The position numbers and the translations under genes are program-made. This document shows positions 3,971 through 40,719 of a stretch of 64,000 nt of DNA, one piece after another. The notes beneath the pieces are model-generated. The model saw nothing but the letters and a program-made list of their open reading frames with translations, did no database searches and was not told where the DNA came from. The stretch spans positions 4,154,001 to 4,218,000 of the forward strand of contig NC_135758.1 of assembly GCF_052425735.1 (NCBI RefSeq), read 5' to 3'. Position 1 is the first letter of the stretch. Each line of letters opens with the position of its first letter. The DNA comes from Oculina patagonica. Taxonomy: Eukaryota.

Positions 3971-5317
3971 GCGCGGGACAAACAAGAGTTTAGTCACGTG
4001 TAACCAAGTTCACAAAACACGCAATCCACTGTAGGACTCTAATGTTCATTTATAAAACAAACTGACCCTTTGTACTAGTAACAAAAAGGAAGTTTGAATT
4101 AAAAAAGAGTGGGGTCAGAAATTATTTGCAAGTTATATGTCAAAAGGTAGTTTTATAAAACACCAGGGGGAGGGGGAAGAAACTTCCTTTGTTACACGAC
4201 TTAAAAAGTGGACATAGCGGTACCAGGCAACCAAGAATGCGCAGTAGCTATCAAATGGTTGCTAAGGGTGTAGTGAATAGCTTGACAAAGTTCATTGTTT
4301 AGTTCGCATGCTTTGGTCTTAACCATGCACAAAACACAATAGCTATTTGCATTTTGATTGTTTCTTTGAAGTTTGCCGGACATCAAAACAACAAACAGTG
4401 ATAACGGTGTCCAGTCTGGCAAAAGTAAGGCTTGCCAATTATACTAATTAAAAATAACTTCACTGATTCTAAAATGATTTACAATTTTTTGGTTGTTAAA
4501 TGTCAACCGTGACAAATTTTTCGCTTGTTGTCCTACGCCACCAAAACATTCTCAGTGACGTGAAACATCAGGTGATAAATCTTGCTGAAAATGCAAAAAA
4601 CAATCTCGGCGGCGTGAAACATCAAACGCAAACACCGCCACAATTCGCATTTCACACGCATACAGTCATTGATATTTAAATCTTTCTGAGATAACAAAAC
4701 TCTGGGTGACGTCTTTCTTAGCAACGTTTGATTGACATAGACTCTCACCGTTTCCAGGCACTGCTATGTCTTCAAAGAAAAGTGCCGAGTGTCTCCCCTC
4801 CCCCCCCTGTAAAACACGGAACAGTTAATTCCCTGCAGGCAAAACTGGTTTACTGTGTTCAATTCGTCAGATGTAGCAACCGGTCTTCTTTAATAAAAGT
4901 GTTTTGTTTTCATTGAATGTTTTTTTATCTTATTTTTACATATTACGCATTCTACACCTCGATCTTCTTTGCCAGGCCTTCTCCGCTTGGCAGTGTTTGA
5001 AAGTCAGACAAGATGGCGATAATCCTAAGCATTCTTCTGGTACTGAGGCCAACACGAGAGGCACTTACCAATGAACAGTGATATACAGAAGCATTTCAAA
5101 TCACTGGTGTAGTGCGATTCAACCAAGCTCACAAATCGCTCACTAATCGCGGACAATGTTACTGTGCAAAGCTAGAGCGATTATCGATCGATTTTGGAAA
5201 GCTTAGCGCATAGCTTTGTAACTGATAAAAACAACTCGCGCAACGTGCCCTAACCAATTAGTGCAATCTTGCTGATATTTCCACCTATCAGAAGCAAAGC
5301 CAAGACCAATCGTGGCT

Positions 5318-33373: not shown

Positions 33374-34860
33374 TTGGAGATAACGTGACATTTGACTTTG
33401 AAAAATTAAAGTAAGTATAACAGAAAGAACAAGATGTTCATTTAATGAAACATGGTTAGGGTGCAGTTGTAACAGTATGTTTTTTTACTTAATTGTATGT
33501 GAATGTGTTCAAACCGATGAATGATGAATGTTTGCGCTGCAAGTGGAGTTAAAAAGTGAAGAAGGGTGGTTGGGGAACTTGATACGGGCGACCATTGACA
33601 TGTAGTGAAATGGTGACTAAGATTTAATGCACTTCCTTGATCACTCCCCAGAAAGCCAGAACTGGCTTATAAGTGAAATGACTTATAACTGGGTTTATCT
33701 TTTTCTTGTTTTAGGAAAGCAAGAGAGCTCGAGCCAGACCCTGCATGCAGCAAGTAATGAGATGTGAATTATGTACAAATGTAAAATAGCAAAGCCTTTG
33801 TTATTAGCTAGGCGAATAGGCCGTTTGTCTCTGTTTCAAAGCGCGCCCCGTGAATACTTTTTTTCATACGAAATGAGGAGTTCATCTGCATGAAAATGAA
33901 CGTGCGGGTAAATCGCATTTGCATCGGAATTGTTCGTACAGAAAGGCGGCTCGAAAATGGTCTCTTCCGGGTCTCCTTGGAAAATCTTTTATACGAAAAT
34001 GAGTTTCACTAAGTCAAATACACGTTCATTTATGGAAATCCAATTCATTTCAATATTAAAACATTTGCCCGATAACTCGTTTTGAAACAGTGCAAAGCTG
34101 AGGCAACCCGGAAATGACCTATTGTATTTTGTGTCATTGCCTTTCCTTTTCAATTTTAAAGACATGCCTTTCAGTGCTTTAACCAATCATGTGTATTTGG
34201 TTGTGTAGTGAAGGCAAAATACGTAATTTCTAGTGTGCATATCATAAGTAGCGTGTTAAAGCCGGACTGATTTAGTTATTGGAAGTTATAATGACACCTC
34301 ACACGAATGGTCATTATAGTTTCCAATATTTAAATTTCCATTTACAATACTAAATGCTCATCGAAACGTACTCAATGAAAGTTAAGTTACTTTTTTGTCA
34401 AATGTATATAGGAAGCAAACGTTTTATTATAGCCCTAAAACGCGGGCTAAGCCTTTGAATGGTTTGAAGGGTTTTGTTACAAGTAACCAAGTTCATAGCC
34501 TGCGTAGCAGACGACACAGTTTCGAGCTCGCGTATAGGAAACGCGAAAGGCGCGAGGGGGCCACGACTTTTCCTCGCGCGGCCTTCTCGCTATCGCGCAC
34601 TCTTTTAAAGGGATACTCTATGCCTTATATGAAGTTTTGCTTAAAAGGTAGTATTTGCCCTATAATATTGGATTTATGACGAAAAATGTGAAGACTGATC
34701 GAAGGTTAAGAAAGGAAAAATCGGTGTTCAAAAGCGCAAATTTGCTGTTTTCGAAGACCGGAAGTGAAAATGCTTTGAAGGCACGCACGTGACTAATGAC
34801 GTAGATGTGAGAACTCGTGCTCAGCTGGATGTTTTGCACGTAAAGCAATTACTGGCAATT

Positions 34861-35735
34861 ATGGATTCCGATGCTTCGCGTAGTTCTGCTTCTTCTCTCT
34901 CTTCTTCGTATGAAAGTACCGATGAAACTGCGTTAGAGGACTGTGAAGGTACGCAACCGTATATGTTTGAGCCTTACGACAGCGAAGCAAGCTCAGGTAC
35001 GGATTCATCAAGCGAGTCCGAGGAGCAGACGTTCGAGCGATTGCAAAACACAGACTGGTAAGATCGTGTCGCAAAATACAGAAAATAAACCTTATTCATT
35101 GTAAACTTTTGATTGTTTAATCTGAAGTACGAACAGTATAACAATAAAGTTTCTTGTGATAAACACATTGGCTGTTCTGTTGTGTAGATAGAGTGCATAT
35201 TAGTTAATTTCTGCTTGTATGTTTTCCTGTTTGTTTTTGTACGCTCGAAGTTATATTTTCGGTATACATGCAAGCGAGAAGTGTGAGCTTATGATAAAAT
35301 CGTATTTTAAAACCTAGGTGTAACTGTGGGAACTGCCAGCGCCTAAATAGAGTGGAGGAGTGCATATGTTGCTCGGAGATCGACTGTGTGGTTGCAAAAT
35401 ACTACGAAGCGGTCGAAGCCGAAGGACTGGACGAGCCCCCGGCATGTATCACCCAGCACCCAGGGTTTCGTGCCGTTTGTTTGAATCGCTGGGTTCTTCA
35501 AACGGCATGGTATCAATATAAGCAGCAGTATACCGATGCACATGAAGGGCCAGACCACAAGCAGAAGAGGCATATAGCCTATAGGCAGTTGGCGAGGTGG
35601 TGTTGGGGACTGCTGGGGAAGCAAATTAGAGTAGTTCTGCCATCATGTGCAGTTTGTTGTATTCGAGCACACTTTCCTCCCCCAGGGAATGAGGATGATT
35701 TTGTATTTGAGGGATTTCGATTTCCCGACGAGTAG
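34861..35735 (+). CDS. Transposon accessory protein (KolX-like) with a P2X7 cytoplasmic ballast / nanor-like Zn-binding domain; 2 exons (34861-35057, 35318-35735)
   Basis: A GT-AG splice joins RLQNTDW to CNCGNC...EECICCSE...CITQHPGF...AYRQLARWCWGLLGKQIRVVLPSCAVCCIRAHFP...GF, the motif series of the P2X7 C-terminal domain. The N-terminus is acidic and Ser-rich with a PYMFEP motif. Confidence 0.85.
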
Positions 35736-36197
35736 ACAGCTGCATTCATTCTATCTATTGAATTGACTTGATTGTTTATTATCATAGGTAGTGTTTTTCA
35801 CATACTAACATTTGCTGACAATAAAACAGTACTAAAATGTAATTATAAATTGGCAAACATTTGTTACTTATTGAAGGCTATGCATTCGGGAAAACGTTTT
35901 TCTTTATGCCGGACGTAGCCTTTATTTGAAGTAATTTCACGATCTAGAAATTAACTGTGATTCAGTGTATCATTATTAATTAAACCTCCCTAATTATTAT
36001 TTCCAAAGGTTGATCTGCTTCTATTATCTGTATTATTCATCCTTCACGTGCAATTTATCAGTTGCTAGAGGTATTGAAATTATAAACAAGCCCAAACAAG
36101 GAAATAAAACTCAATATATTGAGCTTGGCTCTGGTAGGATTGATAGTTATTTTCTGTGAAGCAATTACTTGTGCTTTTCACAACAGCTTAGAGGCAA

Positions 36198-39100
36198 TTA
36201 ATTGTTTTTAAATCTTGACTTTAAGGCATTTACAGCAGCCTGCTTGTCAGGGCGGTCAAAATCTGCTGACAGTGGCCGAGGGGCAGCAACTCTTTCTAAG
36301 ACACGTGTCTCATTTCCTTCAAGAATTTGCAACACTCTTTCCTTCAGATCATCAACATATCCTGAATAAAACAATCAGAGGAATAAATATTTCAGTGGCC
36401 GAAAAGTAAACGAATGCCATAAATGCAGACTTTCACTGAGATCACATTAAAGACAAACCAAGGAGCTTAAATGCACCTTCAATCGATAGTTTCTAAGGTG
36501 GTTTAAGCATGATTCCATATGATTTCAATACTCCATATGATTTTAATTGTTCTTGCTAACAGTGTATGTGTGATTTGTTTACAATAGATTTTTCTAATAT
36601 TGTATTGGTTATTGTCATGCACACATTGTTAAAGTATTATCTTTAAACGAAAATTGTGCAAATTGCATCAATACTTACTATATGTGCATTTAACTAAGAT
36701 CTTCTTGACTGTATACTCCCCTTTCTTGTATTTTGGGAATGCAATGTTCACCCTCTCAGTACCATCTTGTAATGTTGCATGTTCTCGGTCACTGTTCTCA
36801 TTAAAATGTAGAATAGAAATCTGCAACCTGGAAGATTGATTTTTAAATATTGAGAAAACTAGATCTAGGTAAAATGATAGTGATGGGATAAGTGATTGTT
36901 GCTTGAAAAAAAATAAAGAAGTTATGATCACGCAGTAGTGACTCCACTACCATTAATTTTTGTAGTCATGTAATTATGTTAAGCGATTACCTGCTTGTCA
37001 TTCCATGGTAAGAGAAAGCCAAACGTTTGGTTGCAAAGTGGTTTTGTACCGAATGAAAGGCCTCGAGTGATGATGTGGCATGCATTCCAGATATCTGCTT
37101 GATATCCTTTAGCAAAGAGCCCTTTGTCAATACCTCGCTCAGTTTCTCAAAGGGGGGTGTACCTGAAGGATAGTAAATTATAAATAACTGTTAAACTGTA
37201 ACTTCTTTTCATGGAAACAAAACTTTACATTGAGTTCATGATTCACAGTCATAACAAGTAACCTGGTTTGAGCCATTTCTTCTTGCGTTCTCTGCCATGC
37301 AATCTTCCATGAAGACACTGGGGAAACAAAGGATTGTCGTGCCCTGAATGCTTGTTCATTATGTGATTTGTGATTGACAACCACTTTGCCTCTTTTAAGT
37401 CTTCATCATCATCATCGGTTGATGCAGCACACCAGAACATGTGATTTACCACACTTTTTTTCCATTTGGAAACCACATCACAGTCTTTCTTTTTGGCAAG
37501 ACTGTCAATCTTTTTACCAAGACCTGAAAGAAATTACAGTCATTTTAAGAATTAATATCATTAACGTTCTGTGTTAAAAGCTTAATTGTCATTAAGCCAA
37601 CCAACCTTTGCCAGCATGCCAGCCATCCAACCTGTGCTTAATAGCAGGCCGTGTTTCCCTCATGTATTTTCTGATCTGTACATGTCTGTCCGTTATTAGA
37701 GTGCTTACTGATAGTCCCTCATCAGATAAAAATTGCAAGGATCTTATCAGGCCTTCTTTTTCCATGGCATTTGAGTTTTTTACTTCATTACTCTGTGGAT
37801 ATGTAATAAAAGAAAAAGCATCGTTAAATTAAGTCCAGTTTTTAATTAATTTTCAATGTTTATATACCAACCTGCACTAACTGGGAATCCAAAATTTTGT
37901 TTTGCTCTAAATCCATGAGAGAGTAAGAGCCATACTTTGCAGAATGCCCTGGGCTGTCGCAGCGACCGTCACCTCCCAATATCAATTCTTTTCCCTCAGC
38001 CTTTATGCCATCCAGTAGAGTGGACTGTTGTTGCCTGTACGTTCTCTCTACTGCAGGGTGTAAATATTCTTTTTGGTGTTTCATAAATGTAGAATATCCA
38101 ATGGTCAGGACATTCATATGCCTCATTATTTTAAGAACCTTTGCTGGGCTTCCACCACCAAAAAGAATTCCACAGGACATCATAATGTTGCCAACAGGAG
38201 TATCACCAATGGATGGCTGAGAATCCCAGCTTCTGGTGTACGAGCAAGACAGGCACTGCTGCCTCACCGTTATCTTGGTTCCAATCCTCGAATTGACACG
38301 CCTATCACATTCTGACCGGCACACAGGACAAAACTCAAACAAACTCAATAAAGAGGATTCCGCCACGAGGAACAAGTTTTGCTGGTGGGCGGGCGCGTTT
38401 GTTGGAGACTCTCTGTGAAAAAAGAATTGCATTTTTTTCAGTCTTTTTTTGCTATTATTGAAAATGCTAAACTTTATATTGTTATTTTGTATTACGTAAT
38501 GTGTAACTCACTTGTACAAACAATCGTCGAAGTCATCAAAATCATCATCTTCATCTATATCGTCGTCGGGGTCAGGAACGTACGAGGGATCGTCAACTGC
38601 GTCCATCTCCTCTTCAGAATCTGATGCTTCATCCTCACTTGCACAAGGTGTTGATGTGGCGAACACTTTGAGAAGAGTACATTGAGTTCCTTGACTTTTA
38701 GTGGGGACAGTAGTTTGAATACCTGCAAAATTATCATAAAAACTTTCTTTACAAACCTACAATTTTTACATTGTATACACAACGGAATACTGTATAAACG
38801 TACCTCTCGCAGTGCTTTTCGTTCGAAACTGTACGGAAACGTTTTTGTTGTTGTGCTGCGTCTGTGTGGATGCCTCCTGTACCCGAGATAAGAACTCGGT
38901 TGCATTTGCTGTTTCCAACCCTTCGACACTGTTTTCATGGGAAGTGGATTCGTGTTTCTCATGTTCAGCGATGATCTTGGAACAAGAACAAGGTAAGTTT
39001 TTAGTACTGTATTTCCGAGTTTCACAAGAATAACAATGTCATTTCATATATATTTATAATCTTTGATACATACCCTGGCAGCTTCTCTTTTTCTGTAAGC

Positions 39101-39490
39101 GCTCCTGGGTTGGTTTTTGGACTGCTGAGTACACGACCCTTGCGAAGACGACTCTTTCGTGACTTCTGCAAGTGAGCTATCATCCCGTCTTTGCTTTTTT
39201 TGTGGCGGACCATTGTTACGGTTAAATATGGTTGGAACAGCGTCGGGTTTTAAAATTCTTTTCATGTTTAATCCTAGCGACACAGCAATTACCGTCTGTG
39301 CTTCAAATGAGTCGTCTGCGAAGTGACTACTGCAGAGTTTGCTTGAAGCCGTCTGAGAAAAATCAGATCGCGTGTTTCTCACGGCATTCGTCCATTGGCG
39401 AGCAACTTGAGGATCTGAAGGCCAGCCATGGAGACTTACATCGTTCTTATTAGTATTGGAACATCCACCGGCTACACAGCGATGTGGCAT
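36198..39490 (-). CDS. THAP-domain DDE transposase (Kolobok), ~9 exons
   Basis: Exon 1 is a THAP domain (MPHRCVAGGC...W...LCSSHF...AVPTIF). Later exons give a CPVC/CLSC Zn module, GDGRCDSPGHSAKY, ITDRH, DGWH, NHMFWC, TSSLEAFHS, HFNEN and a terminal PRPLSADFDRPDK...SRFKNN*. Approximate exons: 39490-39074, 38975-38804, 38722-38511, 38413-37870, 37792-37606, 37522-37262, 37161-36991, 36827-36679, 36361-36198. Confidence 0.85.
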
Positions 39491-40719
39491 GATCAAGTTT
39501 TAGACTGAATTAAGAAGGTTATTTTCGTTTAGAAGTAAAAAATCAAGACAATCTTCGCGAGCGATCTCCACTTGTTTATTAATGAATCCTACCGGAAATG
39601 GCTTACGAGTTCTCATATCTACGTCACTTCCGTTTTTCGCCCCGAGCGCTAAGTTCAAATCGCACGTTCGCAATTTTTCCAGTTTTTACGAAAATGAAAG
39701 ACAAATAGACAGCTTTTTCTTGCAAATATCTTTTATTAAGGTTATAAGGTATCAATTTATGAAATTTCGTTTTGGGGTGTAGAGTATCCCTTTAAACGCG
39801 CTAAAAAACACAGACGCCTGCCAAGTTCACAAAACACTCATTCCACTGTAGGACTCTACTGGTCATTTATAAAACAAACTGACCCTTAATTAGTAGTAAC
39901 AAAAAGGAAGTTTAAATTTAATTAGAGTGGGCTCAGAAATTATTTGTAAGTTATATGTCCAGAGGAAGTTTTATAATACACGAAACAGTTGATCCTTCTG
40001 CAGGCAATAACTGGTTCACTGTGTTCTCATCTTTTATTGTAATCAGCCATATGTAACAACCGGTCTTATAAAAGTGTTTTTGTTTTCATGGAAGTTTTAT
40101 CTTATTTTTACACATTACGCATTCCACACTTCGATCTTGTTGACCAGTCCCTCTTCGATTGTTTGGAAGGCAGACAAGATAGCGATAATCCTAAGCATTC
40201 TTCTGCTCTTAGTTTGGCTGGGAGAACATGACGAGAAGAAGGTTTCATTGATTGATCTTGTTTTTGAAGGCTCTAAACGGCTCGATTGACTGGGATTTTA
40301 AATTTTTTTATAGTTTTAAACACATTGATATATAGTTACAACACGAGAAGTCAAAACAGGCGGCATTTGAAAGCCTCAGTCACATCACTTCTGGAGCCAA
40401 AACCGTGTCGTTTATCACAGCGATAATGATTGGAACAATTTACCAGATAAAGTGAAGAACGCTGCTGACATCCTCTTCTCATTCTCCTCATCATCCTCTT
40501 TCTGTAAGTTATTTCCCTCTTTTTTCTGCGTCGATGTCTTTGTCTCAATATGAACTGATGTATTGCAGATAATATCGTGCTCGTTTACTATAAATATGTT
40601 ATATCCTTTTAACTACAGTGACTCAAAATTAAGAGGCTTCCACGAAATTCCAACCACCTCTCTTCCATATACAAACAGCCGTTCCGTACTCAAATCGTTT
40701 CGTACTAAAATAGTTCTTA

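Follow-up and report, generated by a model that had tools for sequence, protein, structure and literature searches.

A transcribed Kolobok transposon of the Kol0 lineage with a P2X7 ballast-like KolX gene in the stony coral Oculina patagonica

Introduction

What is a gene for a protein resembling the cytoplasmic ballast of the P2X7 receptor doing next to a transposase gene in a coral genome? The question is raised by a 64,000-nucleotide (nt) stretch of the Oculina patagonica genome (NCBI RefSeq assembly GCF_052425735.1, contig NC_135758.1, positions 4,154,001 to 4,218,000 of the forward strand), here referred to as the window. At positions 34609-39791, it contains a 5,183-bp DNA transposon with two genes that face each other tail to tail: a plus-strand gene for a 204-residue ballast-like protein and a minus-strand gene for a 757-residue transposase with a THAP domain. 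We consider it very likely that this element of a stony coral belongs to the Kol0 lineage of the Kolobok superfamily and is structurally intact, transcribed, and autonomous, with the ballast-like protein representing KolX.

The connection between KolX and P2X7 is already known. Kojima and Bao (Mob DNA 13:24, 2022; PMC9587614) described the KolX proteins of Kol0 elements as clearly similar to residues 476-595 of P2X7 and as adopting the ballast fold, with two zinc ions and seven conserved cysteines. They pointed out that the membership of the metazoan ballast-like proteins in Kolobok elements had escaped Rump et al. (2020), attributed the origin of P2X7 to the fusion of a P2X4-like gene with KolX, and regarded Nanor as a probable domesticated KolX. 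The original prediction for this locus, made from the sequence alone, had arrived at the same view, proposing that the P2X7 tail may be a domesticated transposon gene and cautioning that the link might already be present in the literature on transposable elements, as indeed it is. The interpretation is supported by the data presented below and was right but not first: the domestication of KolX as the P2X7 tail and Nanor was published in 2022. Among the papers covered by a full-text search for "KolX," there was no other biological paper and no functional study of this protein.

Boundaries and classification of the element

Both ends of the transposon fall on the very bases that had been predicted, and the features that lie between them are listed in Table 1. 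The perfect inverted ends comprise 12 nt (AGGGATACTCTA on the left and TAGAGTATCCCT on the right), and beyond these bases the similarity between the two ends is only scattered. The element sits in a TTAA site inside an older high-copy repeat (34380-34608 and 39796-39960), which is reflected in the read depth of run X1: ∼4,000 in the left flank, 200 to 1,000 in the right flank, and ∼25 to 30 inside the element. Where contigs represent other copies of this host repeat, they read ...CTCTTTTAAA|CGCGCTAAAAAA..., with a single TTAA between the left and right flanks, and these paralogous empty sites confirm both the boundaries of the element and the duplication of the TTAA. A 139-nt piece of the right-flank repeat (90% identity) is also found at positions 4004-4141, and no second copy of the element itself was detected within the 64-kb window.

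According to Kojima and Bao (PMC9587614), Kolobok transposons are defined by the duplication of TTAA upon insertion, by 5′-RR..YY-3′ termini, which distinguish them from piggyBac, and by a DDE transposase with a C/DxxH motif; the original Kolobok group, Kol0, is defined by the second protein, KolX, and all Kolobok lineages except Kolobok1 have a zinc-finger motif between C/DxxH and the last catalytic Glu. The coral element is flanked by TTAA duplications (as are the related copies at loci L005, L006, and L008), has 5′-AG..CT-3′ ends, and encodes a transposase in which the catalytic residues and the DxxH motif can be assigned, at the level of motifs, to D415/D419, D482, and E630 and to D503-G-W-H506, respectively. 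The conserved blocks GGDGRCDSPG (residues 413-422), LITDRH (479-484), DGWH (503-506), VNHMFW, an H/C-rich stretch (562-585), and SSLEAFHS (627-634) are collinear with the blocks LGDGRCDSPG, VTDHRH, DVFHMAK, KNHLWY, HIANRHTF..KKCAHHRL, and LEVYHN of the transposase Kolobok_1_BF1p (Data S5), the GDGRCDSPG motif being identical in both proteins. The H/C-rich stretch, NHIMNKHSGHDNPLFPQCLHGRLH, lies between DxxH and the last Glu, resembles the HIANRHTF..KKCAHHRL block, and is a candidate for the zinc finger. A search against Pfam with the transposase yielded a Mutator match (PF20700; E = 8e-6) that, at 25.4 bits, falls under the cutoff of 26.5, as well as a weak MULE match. Such weak matches are expected, since Kolobok shares the C/DxxH motif with MuDR, P, and hAT (PMC9587614).

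The second gene of the element encodes a protein whose motifs match those of Kolobok-1_NV2p, Kolobok-1_Aqu_2p, and Kolobok-1_XT2p (Fig. S6), that is, KolX. Thus the TTAA duplication, the AG..CT termini, the core motifs of the transposase, and KolX together identify the element, on sequence grounds, as a Kolobok of the Kol0 lineage, in agreement with the original prediction, which had pointed to the TTAA duplications and the second open reading frame (KolX) of Kolobok elements. It shares the TTAA target, RR..YY termini, C/DxxH-type DDE transposase, and KolX with the families Kolobok-1_XT, -1_NV, -1_Aqu, and -1_BF (Kapitonov and Jurka; Kojima and Bao, 2022), and the series WCxCGxC...ECxCC...CIT...AYRQ...LPSC is common to KolX proteins of Kol0 families. 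Nothing categorical sets this copy apart from the known Kol0 families; its own specifics are a 9-exon transposase gene, a 2-exon KolX gene placed tail to tail with it, a 12-nt terminal inverted repeat (TIR), mirrored subterminal motifs, and the retention of intron 1 in a transposase transcript. The best protein matches of the element come from Montipora.

Another superfamily that duplicates TTAA is piggyBac, a few families of which even encode a protein resembling KolX's C-terminal part (Kojima and Bao, PMC9587614). However, the AG..CT termini are of the type that the same authors contrast with piggyBac, and most of the seven cysteines are missing from the KolX-like proteins of piggyBac elements (PMC9587614), whereas the coral KolX has every one of them. 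In addition, the Pfam scan revealed THAP, Mutator, and MULE and no piggyBac family, and the core motifs of the transposase fit those of Kolobok_1_BF1p. The termini and the type of transposase exclude a piggyBac-type element, an assignment to which we give practically no credence.

KolX is a homologue of the P2X7 ballast

The KolX gene was predicted to consist of two exons and to encode a particular series of motifs. In the gene model, the exons are bordered by donor TG|GTAAGA and acceptor ag|G splice sites, and all of the motifs (WCNCGNC, EECICCSE, AYRQ, LG, R..LPSC, and IR..FP) are found in the 204-residue product. Its N-terminal 66 residues, a head described as disordered, abound in Ser, Glu, and Asp and are followed by the ballast-like body. 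The part encoded by exon 2 matches the Pfam domain P2RX7_C (PF20478) with an E value of 3.2e-13 (50.5 bits, against a cutoff of 23.5) and, in a search of all solved chains, residues 501-591 of human P2X7 with an E value of 2.5e-5.

The fold predicted for KolX points in the same direction. An AlphaFold2 model built on an alignment of 40 coral and cnidarian homologues is of medium confidence (a predicted local distance difference test score of 75.9 and a predicted template modeling score of 0.70). When this model was used as a Foldseek query, the top 14 matches were all P2X7 structures (probability 1.00, E values from 6e-3 to 6e-2, 28 to 33% identity), and the next match had an E value of 3.8. 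In VIA-align comparisons, the model aligned with residues 505-595 of P2X7 with a Z score of 10.0, and residues 1-135 of the model aligned with P2X7 residues 477-595 with Z scores of 7.2 to 7.5, compared with no more than 2.8 for unrelated chains. The profile and structure comparisons with the P2X7 ballast that had been proposed as checks of the relationship therefore both bear it out.

All seven cysteines of the zinc sites are present in KolX (C67, C69, C72, C83, C84, C109, and C176), and most of them vary little or not at all among the 40 homologues. They align with C477, C479, C482, C498, C499, C506, and C572 of P2X7, which we take to be the zinc ligands from the seven conserved cysteines reported in the literature and from our own reading of the motifs. 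Also shared are the equivalents of A549, Y550, P570, and F581-P582 (P2X7 numbering).

For the guanine nucleotide site, the picture is mixed. Rat P2X7 contacts GDP through R546, H547, R574, R578, and K583 (Rump et al., 2020; PMC7016195). Examination of the GDP contacts, a check that the original prediction had proposed, showed that three of the five are kept in KolX (R150, H151, and R182, corresponding to R546, H547, and R578), whereas V178 and P187 stand in place of R574 and K583, respectively. The three retained residues are invariant or nearly so in the coral/cnidarian alignment. Rump et al. (PMC7016195) found only R546 and R578 to be kept beyond deuterostomes; the cnidarian KolX family keeps the equivalent of H547 as well.

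Taken together, the profile match, the sequence motifs, and the predicted fold identify the body of KolX as homologous to P2X7 residues 477-595, the half of the ballast that holds the zinc cysteines and the guanine nucleotide site. Compared with P2X7 (Protein Data Bank entries 6u9v/6u9w and 9e3m-q), to which its residues 67-204 are 28 to 33% identical, with Z scores of up to 10.0, KolX is a soluble stand-alone protein: it has no channel, anchor, or cap domain, the first half of the ballast (residues 393-476) is missing, and the stretch from the CC pair to the ACIT motif is ∼20 residues longer. Closer to it in architecture are Nanor and the nanor-like (ZCD) proteins (PTHR36981), which are also short and stand-alone and align with KolX over the whole length (Fig. 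S6, PMC9587614). Nanor is regarded as a domesticated host gene (PMC9587614), in contrast to the KolX described here, which lies inside transposon ends next to a transposase gene.

A similarity of residues 70-100 encoded by KolX exon 2 (35526-35618) to residues 37-66 of the core antigen of hepatitis B virus (E values of 0.003 against a tandem construct and of 0.4 to 0.9 against single chains) was considered and set aside as weak and probably due to chance.

The transposase gene and the transcripts of both genes

The convergent arrangement of the ballast gene with a THAP-DDE transposase gene was correctly recognized in the original prediction. The transposase gene consists of nine exons that encode 757 residues without a single in-frame stop, and all eight of its introns have GT-AG ends. 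Introns 2 to 8, i.e., seven of the eight, are joined at exactly the predicted bases in contigs with no mismatches from runs X8 and X14 (organism A), and all of these joints have CT..AC ends on the plus strand. The contigs from run X1 are all unspliced and contain none of the transposase joints, which indicates that RNA, rather than a processed genomic copy, is the source of the joints.

The remaining intron, intron 1, is covered by a single RNA contig, X8 record 16 (contiguous over 38801-39277), which retains it and is nevertheless spliced at intron 2. Translation of such a transcript would stop after 148 residues, so that a THAP-only product is predicted from this one contig of one run. For KolX, RNA contigs from runs X8 and X14 cover both exons, end at 35059, and leave the intron bin empty.

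The transcripts of the two convergent genes appear to meet. Record 9 of run X14 extends without a break from the spliced transposase exons down to position 35605, inside KolX exon 2, which suggests that the convergent transcripts overlap or abut, the contigs carrying no strand information. Convergent transcripts over 35605-36360 are a possible source of double-stranded RNA. A single read of the small-RNA run X22, which carries another organism label, maps to the element and provides no evidence either way.

Each of the two genes is preceded by the same pair of motifs in mirror-image orientation, located 43 to 150 nt upstream of the inward-reading gene's start codon. CGAAGACCGGAAGTGA, at 34752-34767, has its partner at 39624-39639 (pair I15; 16 nt, 88%), and TGACGTAGATGTGAGAACTCGT, at 34797-34818, has its partner at 39605-39626 (pair I1; 22 nt, 95%). 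The motifs comprise an ETS-like GGAAGTGA box and a TGACGTAGAT(G/A)TGAGAACTCGT box, which are contiguous at the right end and ∼30 nt apart at the left end. Judging from their placement, these motifs may represent promoter elements or binding sites for the transposase. A scan of positions 34300-40100 against Rfam at E values of up to 1 produced no match, i.e., no ribozyme detectable by Rfam.

Table 1. Features of the Kolobok element and its target site (window coordinates; TSD, target site duplication)
Feature	Position	Strand	Evidence or remarks
Left TSD, TTAA	34605..34608	.	In contigs from paralogous empty sites, 34609 is joined straight to 39797
Left TIR, AGGGATACTCTA, 5′-AG (RR) terminus	34609..34620	+	Pair I5, 100% complementary; end common to locus L002
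Left subterminal motifs, CGAAGACCGGAAGTGA and TGACGTAGATGTGAGAACTCGT	34752..34818	+	43-109 nt upstream of KolX ATG
KolX exon 1, Ser/Glu/Asp-rich N terminus ending ..NTD-W	34861..35057	+	RNA contigs from X8 and X14 over 34846-35059, 0 mismatches
KolX intron (GT..AG)	35058..35317	+	Bin 35148-35334 at zero depth in X8 and X14, both exons covered
KolX exon 2, ballast-like domain, 7 Zn-site cysteines and RH...R trio	35318..35735	+	Stop codon 35733-35735
Transposase exon 9, including stop codon	36198..36361	-	Spliced joint 36360/36678 in X8 and X14
Transposase exon 8	36679..36827	-	RNA joints
Transposase exon 7, predicted third catalytic residue E630 in SSLEAFHS	36991..37162	-	RNA joints; collinear with LEVYHN of Kolobok_1_BF1p
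Transposase exon 6, NHMFW and H..H..C.H zinc-finger-like stretch	37263..37523	-	RNA joints
Transposase exon 5, predicted second catalytic Asp (D482 in TDRH) and D503xxH506 signature	37606..37792	-	Weak MULE match; RNA joints
Transposase exon 4, CxxC..CxxC and predicted first catalytic Asp (GGDGRCDSPG, 413-422)	37872..38412	-	Mutator PF20700, E = 8e-6, weak
Transposase exon 3, acidic linker	38512..38722	-	Joints 38412/38512 and 38719/38801
Transposase exon 2	38804..38975	-	Gene model
Transposase intron 1	38976..39073	-	Kept in X8 record 16
Transposase exon 1, THAP zinc finger	39074..39490	-	Pfam THAP, E = 1.8e-16
Right subterminal motifs, mirror of 34752-34818	39605..39639	-	∼115 nt upstream of transposase ATG
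Right TIR, TAGAGTATCCCT, CT-3′ (YY) terminus	39780..39791	-	
Right TSD, TTAA	39792..39795	.	Sequence and empty-site contigs

Stand-alone KolX homologues and the direction of transfer

A word search identified 325 stand-alone homologues of KolX, the best of which, from Montipora capricornis, is 91% identical to the coral protein; several members of this set are named "P2X purinoceptor 7-like" by NCBI. The genomic loci of eight independent homologue clusters, a small and mostly cnidarian sample, were searched with the two proteins of the element. No gene record exists for P0001 (Montipora capricornis) and P0044 (Acropora millepora), the closest named homologues, and other clusters were taken in their place. 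In all eight clusters, KolX was found in a Kolobok context, which fits the predictions that ballast-only genes sit in transposons and that many invertebrate genes annotated as P2X7-like belong to transposable elements.

In six of these clusters, a convergent transposase of the Kolobok type, or what is left of one, lies no more than 4 kb downstream of KolX (loci L001 from Xenia; L003 from Exaiptasia, with THAP only; L007; L008; L009 to L012 from coral metagenomes; and L013). Locus L008 is bounded by TTAA|AGGG...CCCT|TTAA. In L007 (9407-12117), the transposase aligns as two long unbroken blocks (residues 230-513 and 524-754), so the transposase gene there must be far poorer in introns than the 9-exon gene described above. 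Locus L002 shares the left end of the element through KolX (window positions 34604-35738, 74% identity) and then diverges. Loci L004 to L006 represent three copies of a 2.95-kb element (L006, 5971-8920) with TTAA duplications, AG..CT termini, and 160-bp TIRs, which occurs at least three times, in near-identical form, within one assembly. This derivative keeps KolX and a THAP remnant and has lost the catalytic core.

The data obtained here do not polarize the direction of transfer between host and transposon. The ballast (ZCD) could, in principle, have been a cellular gene first, later captured by an ancestor of Kol0, with P2X7 and Nanor stemming from the cellular lineage; the report of Rump et al. 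(2020; PMC7016195) that metazoan species each have one to a few ZCD genes, with no expansion, is in line with such a scenario. However, the Kolobok context of all eight homologue clusters suggests that many supposedly "cellular" ZCD genes probably belong to transposons, a sponge, cnidarians, amphioxus, and a frog have Kol0 elements with KolX (Fig. S6, PMC9587614), and Kojima and Bao argue for transfer from transposon to host (PMC9587614). Capture of a cellular gene by the transposon is therefore improbable, and the origin of the P2X7 ballast from KolX is the preferred reading.

Mobility of the element

Relative to the window, there is a 3-nt deletion at 34695 (in runs X8 and X1) and a 10-nt deletion at 35908 (in X8, X14, and X1), both of them noncoding, and the best-matching organism-A contigs otherwise show no mismatches. 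An alternative reading is that the element is a fixed, immobile copy, the two intact and expressed genes of which have been kept by the host as an early-stage domesticated KolX/transposase pair. Both reading frames are indeed intact and transcribed, the same insertion, with its flank junctions, is seen in organism-A runs from two studies, near-identical sequence is found in runs under several organism labels (0.5 to 0.89 of the sampled words), and no allelic empty site was seen. The run that matches the sequence best, however, may be the source sample of the window itself, so this shared presence is weak evidence. A young insertion would be expected to have intact TIRs and an intact target site duplication, the same DNA-like run contains related copies that differ at several positions per 100 to 200 nt, and the many near-identical KolX clusters, with up to 266 members, point to an active family. 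An incipient domestication of this pair of genes is, in our opinion, very improbable.

Several observations weigh against the view of this copy as an intact autonomous Kol0 transposon. The perfect TIR is only 12 nt long; the transposase is likened to a named Kolobok protein only motif by motif, and Pfam contains no Kolobok model; and the Foldseek E values obtained for KolX (6e-3) are modest. In the transcripts, intron 1 is retained in the sole contig that covers it, the full-length transposase mRNA was not seen end to end, and the KolX junction has no bridging contig among those listed and is supported only indirectly. Finally, as regards mobility, this is the sole copy in the window, the empty sites are paralogous and not allelic, and the same insertion is present in all organism-A runs compared.

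Possible mechanism and regulation

Judging from the protein families, the THAP domain presumably recognizes the ends of the element, and the DDE core would carry out cut-and-paste transposition at TTAA. KolX might serve as a zinc-stabilized cofactor or regulator of the transposase that acts in trans, a role that is weakly suggested by its conservation in Kol0 elements from sponge to frog and by its retention in derivatives that have lost the catalytic core. The further proposal that KolX senses GDP or GTP and thereby regulates transposition is unsupported, with three of the five contact residues kept.

A doubtful possibility is that Kol0 elements regulate themselves through two small trans-acting products, a THAP-only protein and KolX, the latter as a zinc- and guanine nucleotide-binding cofactor in which the R-H...R half of the P2X7 GDP site is preserved. 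The THAP-only protein would come either from intron 1 retention (148 residues) or from derivatives of the 2.95-kb type that combine THAP with KolX, and small-RNA silencing could be fed by the 3′ ends of the convergent genes, which one RNA contig joins. Neither the self-regulation nor the silencing was found described for Kolobok in the literature searched. A parallel is the P element of Drosophila, whose DDE transposase likewise has an N-terminal THAP domain and belongs to the same C/DxxH group: its truncated repressors, produced by intron retention or by internal deletions such as KP, resemble the intron 1 retention and the THAP-keeping derivative at L006. A repressor role for the THAP-only product would be pure analogy. 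The P element belongs to a different superfamily: its target duplication is 8 bp long, its TIRs are 31 bp long, and its transposase itself contains a GTP-binding insertion domain.

Implications

The element described here is an ordinary, well-preserved member of Kol0. The observations that it adds to the existing picture are small: the retention of intron 1 in one contig, the deletion derivatives that combine THAP with KolX, and the conservation of three of the five GDP contacts. The idea that the ballast is a domesticated transposon protein and that invertebrate "P2X7-like" genes represent KolX, which was put forward in 2022, matters both for the biology of P2X7 and for genome annotation. This copy provides a clean example, being complete, with a transposase gene spliced as modeled, in a coral in which such genes are still labeled "P2X purinoceptor 7-like" by NCBI. 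It could be used as a template for finding the role of KolX in transposition and in the binding of zinc and guanine nucleotides, and knowing the function of KolX might, in turn, shed light on the role of the ballast in P2X7.

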